Positions 41,143 to 42,173 of a stretch of DNA of 64,000 bases are shown here, piece by piece (position 1 is the first letter of the stretch; each line of letters begins with the position of its first letter). The notes below the pieces were generated by a model. It had not been told where the DNA came from. It ran no database searches and was given only the letters and a program-made list of their open reading frames with translations. The position numbers and the translations under genes were made by a program. Source of the stretch: Scyliorhinus canicula (taxonomy: Eukaryota); NCBI RefSeq assembly GCF_902713615.1, contig NC_052161.1:4195698-4259697 (forward strand). The letters run 5' to 3'.

Positions 41143-42173
41143 CTGTGAAGAATAAACAACTTAGTCAGTACAGCTCTATTCCAGAATCTAGATACCAACA
41201 TCTGTTCCACACAAGATACCTTTGCAGTTTCAAACTCATTTGCTACTGAAGGCACCGTACCATGTAAAGCAACCTCAGTTTAAGTAACAGAGGAATCAAT
41301 TAAATGTTTTAAGTGGGGAACTAGCTGCTCACTTCTGAAAAGGGCCTCATTTTTACACTTTAAAATGACTCAATGCCAACCAGTATCAACAGCAGCAAAT
41401 ATGTAAAATTATAAATGTACTTGCTATGCAAAATTTGTGTTTAAGGTTTTTTTTTTTAAAAAAAGGACAAATGAACTCTGCTGGAGGTGGGGGAAGGGGT
41501 GGGAGAAAGGAAATTTCAGGGAGGAGGTTTGGTCTGGAGAGGGTTAACTGGCTGATGAAGCCGTGCATCCCAAGCTTCTTCGCAAGCGCGGTTTCGCAGG
41601 CTGCGCGCAAAAGCACCTGTAGGGAAGAAAAGAAAAACAGCGCAGCGAAACTCCATGAATATTTTAGCAAAACCAGGAAGATTCAGCAGTATCCAAGTCA
41701 AAGTCATCTTTCTCTGTGGTGCCACACATTTGTGGCACACCTATGATTACCAGTGAAAAGCCAACCTAAATTTCTCTTCACTTTAATTCAAGCATCTTGT
41801 GCATTCCCTCACCCCCCCAATCCACCCATACTTTGGAGCTGAATATTCACTTTATATCATGGTCATGTTTGTTCATGGAACTTCGAGACCAAAGCAAGCA
41901 AGCCGCGCCAGCGCAAGCGCGAGGTAAACGCTGCGCGACCTGAAAGGAACGTTTTGTGAAAGACAAATACAAACTAAAATTTGTAGCGCAGGCGCAATGG
42001 GATTCCAGCATCTCCTTCCAACTGAAAAGAAAGCAAATTAGTGCCAGTACCAAATGTACCAGATTCTGTTAGGGAAACCAGCTAGCCATCAACAGACCAA
42101 TCCTTTCTTTTTGTTTTAAGTTTTCTTTCTCTCAAAATGAAAAAACATCAGTCACCGGGAATTCGTGGAATAC
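41143..42173 (-). promoter_or_regulatory. OGA intron 11: candidate detained intron with decoy/poison splice elements
   Basis: 1031 nt, no recognisable TE, weak donor CAG|GTATTC, three internal polyY-YAG acceptors (exon starts 42021, 41939, 41616), duplicated CpG-rich module. Confidence 0.6.

Follow-up and report, generated by a model that had tools for sequence, protein, structure and literature searches.

Three donor-less acceptor-like sites and a recurrent palindromic box in the conserved core of OGA intron 11, the counterpart of a detained human intron

The window analyzed here, a 64,000-nucleotide stretch of Scyliorhinus canicula DNA (NCBI RefSeq assembly GCF_902713615.1, contig NC_052161.1, positions 4,195,698 to 4,259,697 of the forward strand), raised the question of what two acceptor-like sites, each followed by the same two short boxes, are doing in the middle of an intron. 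A preliminary description of this DNA had proposed that selection keeps the two boxes together as a protein-binding or structural splicing element. From its translations, the gene on the minus strand was identified as OGA (O-GlcNAcase). Together, OGT and OGA hold protein O-GlcNAc levels steady via regulated intron detention, and SFSWAP has recently been identified as a regulator of OGT intron detention. In human cells, the OGA detained intron DI-2 is one of two conserved, O-GlcNAc-responsive detained introns flanking exon 11, and exon 11 skipping generates a decay substrate (Tan et al. 2020, PMC7261177).

The two sites were located in OGA intron 11 (41143..42173, minus strand), which spans 1031 nt between the end of exon 11 at 42174 and the start of exon 12 at 41142. 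These flanks were assigned by translating the exons and mapping orthologous proteins, and they give the intron the position of DI-2. For the comparison, eight OGA loci (bamboo shark, bowfin, eel, halosaur, piranha, king cobra, dipper and mole-rat) were reached via full-length OGA proteins, by a representative search and a homologue search, and fetched; intron 11 was delimited in each locus and aligned, and the resulting nine-species alignments contain the window shark and eight other jawed vertebrates. The strong intronic conservation of DI-2 was found here as well: conserved blocks had 22-44% invariant columns in the nine species vs 0-2% in the variable parts, where identity was 35-44%. The intron of the bamboo shark was about 90% identical to that of the window. 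The module sits in the conserved core of the intron by which human cells tune OGA. As suggestive evidence of RNA from this region, an intron-dominated stretch had 30-85% of its words present in transcriptome-sized assemblies from at least nine studies, the run types being guessed. When the window was compared with Rfam, no match reached the gathering score, and none was found in 41100-42169 at E values up to 1. The neighboring exon 11 (42174-42259) was almost identical in nucleotides from shark to mammal, third codon positions included. Elsewhere in the window, plus-strand reading frames similar to a family X DNA polymerase were observed upstream, at 1281-9601, where tandem repeats whose reading frames are rich in proline and serine break them at about 6900-9000, and a run of N at 36752-36917, an assembly gap or a masked stretch, lies amid reverse-transcriptase-like and SINE-like reading frames.

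Next, the letters of the module were inspected on the minus strand. At site B (41940..41962), 234 nt into the intron, a branch-point-like UUCAC and a polypyrimidine tract precede CAG|G. After the CAG|GT comes box 1, CGCGCAGC (41930..41937), then an 8-nt spacer and box 2, CGCGCTTGCG (41912-41921). At site A, 557 nt into the intron, a 90% pyrimidine tract and its CAG|G (41617..41638) are followed by the nine bases GTGCTTTTG, box 1 (41600..41607), a 9-nt spacer and box 2 (41581..41590). The preliminary description, which placed two cryptic acceptors about 320 nt apart, was accurate on these points: the AGs are separated by 323 nt, the 8-nt and 10-nt boxes are identical in the two copies, and the spacers differ; its term "cryptic acceptor" is a label based on sequence. 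Apart from these two copies, the CGCGCAGC 8-mer was absent from the 64 kb window, with about 0.17 occurrences expected by chance, and the exact 10-mer was likewise restricted to sites A and B. The dense CpG reported at both copies was also reproduced, with 9 in 41561-41650 and 12 in 41881-42000, and both stretches belong to the top 1% of 100-nt windows (mean, 2.0). The two CpG-rich stretches were then shuffled separately, with dinucleotides preserved, in 5000 trials. A chained shared 8-mer and 10-mer appeared in 3 of the 5000 shuffles, and a shared 10-mer with no 8-mer requirement in 445 (9%), the latter being frequent because T-rich tracts are present in both stretches.

In the comparison of orthologues, a polypyrimidine-CAG|G was invariant in all nine species at three sites, i.e., A, B and a third pseudo-acceptor upstream of site B, referred to as acceptor 1 (42022..42037, minus strand). 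At site B, the CAGG and most tract positions were invariant; at site A, the CAGG was invariant and the tract letters varied, while pyrimidine richness stayed. The tracts of the three sites matched that of the true exon 12 acceptor in pyrimidine richness. Tracts that change letters yet stay pyrimidine-rich are a strand-specific signature of the RNA level. In the four ray-finned fishes, both A and B read AG|GA, and in sharks and tetrapods the acceptor abuts GT, indicating that AG|G, and not AG|GT, is the conserved feature. No conserved donor was found downstream of any of the three sites, and the amniote introns contained no donor-like site of at least 2 bits, as scored with an approximate matrix; hence, none of the three sites can define an exon. 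There was no conserved polyadenylation signal after site A or site B either.

The core of box 1, GCRCAGC, was kept at site A in nine of nine species, where G, C, C, A, G and C were invariant, and at site B in eight of nine. The composite YAGG-N1-11-GCRCAGC was found on the sense strand, in intron 11 only, in every one of the nine OGA loci (13-64 kb each), and both boxes were unique to the intron in the window. This restriction shows that the pattern is not a dispersed repeat, a possibility that the preliminary description had raised. As judged from the alignments, deep purifying selection acts on the box-1 core and on both acceptor-like sites. The proposal that selection keeps both boxes was thus supported from sharks to mammal, i.e., in nine jawed vertebrates, for the acceptors and the box-1 core, but not for box 2 at site A, which was found only in the two sharks. 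There, box 2 had no invariant columns and 40% identity, equal to background, and the idea of one conserved bipartite unit had to be abandoned. Half of the module has, on this comparison, been kept for more than 400 million years, and the other half is a shark-lineage copy of a second recurrent motif. An origin of sites A and B by segmental duplication was considered and rejected: in local alignment, the two modules did better than shuffles in bowfin, near the acceptor only, and to a weak extent in the bird, and in seven of the nine species they were at or near background. At the sequence level, sites A and B have no detectable paralogy beyond short motifs.

The second motif is GCGCNNGCG, mostly GCGCNTGCG, which is palindromic, and box 2 is one instance of it. 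At site B, only its GCGC core was invariant, and the bamboo shark differed at two of the ten positions. The copies of GCGCNNGCG in intron 11 numbered four in sharks, two in ray-finned fishes, and one plus degenerate ones in amniotes. One of these copies, GCGCCTGCGC in block 2 (41986..41995, minus strand), sits between acceptor 1 and site B and was present in eight of nine species, being degenerate in bowfin. Intron 10, which corresponds to DI-1, contained a copy in all nine species, 450-810 nt into the intron; its shark form is GCGCAAGCG (50510..50518, minus strand) and in the other species it reads GCGCA(T/C)GCGAGCTT. Apart from these copies and those toward the gene 5' end, described below, there were 0 to 1 per locus in 12-63 kb. 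Read in this way, box 2 is an element separate from the acceptors and box 1 that recurs in both regulated OGA introns, and the letter-for-letter agreement of the A and B copies of box 2 in the window shark is, by the same alignments, lineage-specific. At site B of ray-finned fishes except piranha, a C-rich insertion of about 25-75 nt comes between box 1 and the GCGC box (L005:11660-11760, L008:12150-12200 and L002 near 10450-10480), indicating that the spacing between these boxes is not constrained.

Intron 10 has its own deeply conserved core on the minus strand (50264-50518), which includes the GCGCA(T/C/A)GCGA box. This box is followed by an invariant AAGGCTATTCTGGTG (50478-50492). Some 200 nt further downstream, at 50264-50279, sharks, snake and mole-rat have a complement of AAGGCTATTCTGGTG, namely CACCAGCATGG(T/C)CTGG, so that a conserved long-range helix may exist in intron 10 too. 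A segment of this intron, AAGGCT..CTGGT, resembles the 5' arm of helix h1 in intron 11, which is described below.

To analyze RNA structure in intron 11, RNAalifold was run on reduced alignments and a further alignment was folded independently, and two long-range helices were common to the runs; with nine species, the power of covariation is limited. Helix h1 pairs a 5' arm at 42078..42105 with a 3' arm, CCAGUUAACCCUCUCCAGACCAAACCU, at 41525..41551 (both minus strand). Its 15-bp core, mostly invariant, was 98% paired in the nine species, and such near invariance offers little covariation. Helix h2 pairs 41869..41885 with 41646..41662 (minus strand), the latter arm adjoining the tract of site A. 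Its 17 bp were 91% paired, and seven pairs were changed on both sides; when the partner was slid by 1-3 columns as a control, only 0-2 double-sided changes were observed. These changes are compensatory and include an A-U, G.U, G-C series, in which the G.U pairs suggest that selection acts on the sense RNA. Helix h1 encloses all three sites, and h2 closes off the variable middle of about 200 nt.

A local pairing was also predicted at site B. Just after acceptor 1 lies the almost invariant GGAGAUGCUG (42006-42015, minus strand), and its AUGCUG (42006-42011) is predicted to form a 6-bp stem with the CAGCGU end of the site-B box 1 (41928-41933). The general form of that end is CAGCRU, in which R is A or G and either pairs with U; the piranha, the sole species with no box 1 at site B, had also changed AUGCUG. 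This prediction lends some support to the structural side of the protein-binding or structural role first proposed for the boxes. The AUGCUG:CAGCRU stem overlaps an alternative in which GGAGAUGC and a block that lies downstream of site A are 83% paired, so that a switch is possible. A search for a 7-nt partner of box 1 at site A turned up none at a conserved position. The predicted GCGC:GCGC pairings shifted between runs and were broken in two species, and covariation cannot test them. Single-sequence folding of the two module regions was not unusually stable (z = +1.3 and -1.1). A GCUGCGC:GCGCAGC hairpin around site A was discarded as a conserved structure, since it exists in sharks (41640-41646 plus box 1) and is not conserved in tetrapods.

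The explanation that we favor, to which we give about an even chance of being right, is that the two modules mark two of three donor-less decoy 3' splice sites within a structured control element of DI-2. Introns 10 and 11 would together set the fate of exon 11, which may be included in a productive mRNA or skipped to give a decay target, or the transcript may be held in the nucleus. All three sites combine a branch-point-like motif and CAG|G with a tract that equals the one at the real exon 12 acceptor. In this explanation, U2AF and U2 recruited to the decoys would be tied up with the exon 11 donor in an unproductive complex, and the intron would be removed more slowly. Whether the decoy sites are accessible would depend on RNA structure. 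The site-B acceptor would be enclosed in a hairpin loop when the CAGCRU end pairs with AUGCUG about 75 nt upstream, and h1 and h2 would enclose the decoy region and, when formed, bring the exon 11 donor nearer to the exon 12 acceptor. Box 1 would serve as a structural or protein-binding partner of the acceptors. We infer this decoy action and gating, as well as a responsiveness of the intron to O-GlcNAc in sharks, from the arrangement and conservation of the parts. Related human data are the cryptic sites of DI-2 itself, which a splicing modulator activates (PMC12894984). The decoy model is usually defined on cryptic exons with both splice sites, and this counts against the explanation in the present case.

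The preliminary description could not match the boxes to a named motif. Box 2, however, equals the DNA consensus of NRF1, GCGCNTGCGC, in which N is free (PMC10810270). The GCGCNTGCG boxes may therefore act on DNA, as sites in the gene body and promoter for NRF1, a dimeric factor sensitive to methylation, the acceptors and box 1 being separate RNA elements, and the O-GlcNAc-enhanced chromatin binding of NRF1 would make transcription, or elongation across exon 11, and hence splicing depend on the O-GlcNAc level. We regard this as unlikely, with a chance that is nonetheless appreciable. In the window, 10 of 10 positions matched at 41986-41995 and at 41911-41920, the latter within GCGCTTGCGC (41911..41921), i.e., box 2 of site B with the next C, and 9 of 10 matched at site A (41581-41590). 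A match of 9 of 10 was conserved in block 2 of intron 11 (eight of nine species) and in intron 10 (nine of nine), compared with the GCGC core only at site B and no conservation at site A. The changes between species also fit the consensus: the intron 11 copies retain T and differ at the fifth base, and those of intron 10 retain A and differ at the sixth, indicating that the motif there lies in reverse orientation relative to intron 11. Furthermore, copies were found toward the gene 5' end in shark, snake and bird, namely the NRF1-like palindrome CGCGCATGCG in the CpG island at the OGA 5' end (63977-63986) and similar boxes near the 5' ends of the snake and bird loci (L004 near 159; L003 near 35 and 180). 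O-GlcNAc on NRF1 raises its stability and chromatin binding (PMC7678849). However, most of the conserved copies end in GCGA and not in GCGC, and single changes in the GCGC repeats cut the affinity of NRF1 several-fold (PMC10810270). Moreover, the boxes are embedded in sequence under clear strand-specific constraint at the RNA level, a palindrome is expected equally under RNA self-pairing, and the acceptors and box 1 are left unexplained.

Genuine use of the sites as alternative 3' splice sites is, in our view, distinctly improbable. Exon 11, or exon 10, would be joined to them, and the resulting early-stop transcripts, either decay targets or messages for OGA lacking the C-terminal domain, would lower productive mRNA. 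The tracts and the CAG|G equal the real acceptor in strength, and, at site B, an in-frame extension of exon 11 would end at a stop about 30 codons on. The absence of a conserved donor or polyadenylation signal downstream of A and B speaks against such use, and when the 11 annotated shorter OGA protein isoforms were mapped, none fell into intron 11 and none ended there. In human DI-2, an alternative donor 227 nt into the intron (sub-DI2) and a 59-bp cryptic exon are used at a low level, and a splicing modulator boosts both (2026, PMC12894984). In the mole-rat, a GT at intron position 228 lies 28 nt upstream of site B, with acceptor 1 60 nt before it (L006:16294-16355). These positions fit the 227-nt sub-DI2 and the 59-bp exon, suggesting that the human events probably use acceptor 1 and a mammal-specific donor, as mapped by position in the mole-rat. 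Such events favor real use of acceptor 1, but they map upstream of site B and not to A or B. Finally, that the two-box identity is a lineage coincidence, in which two GC-rich conserved patches chance to agree where there is no constraint and the module does not function as a whole, is very unlikely: the changes in box 2 of the bamboo shark, the shark-only box 2 at site A, the background-level alignment of the modules in seven of nine species and the 9% of local shuffles sharing a 10-mer are in its favor, but the chained boxes arose in just 3 of 5000 shuffles, and the conservation of the box-1 core and both acceptors in nine species indicates that at least half of the pattern is selected.

Within the favored explanation of decoy acceptors in a structured element, what the parts list gives is a conserved intron resolved into mutable parts kept since the ancestor of shark and human: three donor-less acceptor-like sites, GCRCAGC after two of them, GCGCNTGCG in both detained introns, and two long-range helices, of which h2 shows clear covariation. 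It is conceivable, though we would put little weight on it, that the GCGCNTGCG boxes of both detained introns and the promoter are read by one O-GlcNAc-sensitive factor. The reader would be NRF1 on DNA, the named candidate, or else an RNA-binding protein, or the boxes would pair with one another as RNA across exon 11, which the same palindrome would also permit. If so, the GCGCNTGCG boxes would be the long-sought sensor input linking the O-GlcNAc level to exon 11 inclusion and intron detention, and the decoy acceptors with the nested helices would be the effector part. The palindromic box thus names a concrete candidate reader in NRF1, itself O-GlcNAc-modified.

A search of the accessible papers returned no description of these pseudo-acceptors, of the GCRCAGC or GCGCNTGCG boxes, or of the long-range helices in OGA/MGEA5. 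The closest known system is the OGA DI-1/DI-2 pair, which concerns the same gene and the same intron between exons 11 and 12, in a study that did not include anatomy at the level of motifs (Tan et al. 2020, PMC7261177). The human cryptic sites in DI-2 belong to the same intron and correspond by position to acceptor 1 and to the GT near site B, but that donor is absent in the shark, and A and B are not used (PMC12894984). The boxes of the box-2 type resemble the NRF1 DNA site in agreeing with it at 9 or 10 of 10 positions and in varying at the free central position; they differ from it in being intronic, in lying within an RNA-constrained element and in mostly having A at the end of the second half-site (PMC10810270). 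Recursive splice sites are similar in that the acceptor abuts GT in sharks and tetrapods. This assignment was rejected, however, as both sites read AG|GA in the four ray-finned fishes, both regenerated donors, GTCGCR as well as GTGCTY, are weak, and at about 1 kb the intron is short. The silencer or decoy exon of OGT intron 4, reportedly the work of Park in 2017 and Parra in 2018, is said to contain weak splice-site-like sequences proposed to stall spliceosome assembly. The OGT decoy exon has both 3' and 5' sites, whereas in OGA intron 11 only acceptor-like sites are conserved, three of them, with no conserved donor to supply the other splice-site-like end. By description, the likeness between them is that each is an ancient conserved element inside an O-GlcNAc-responsive detained intron.
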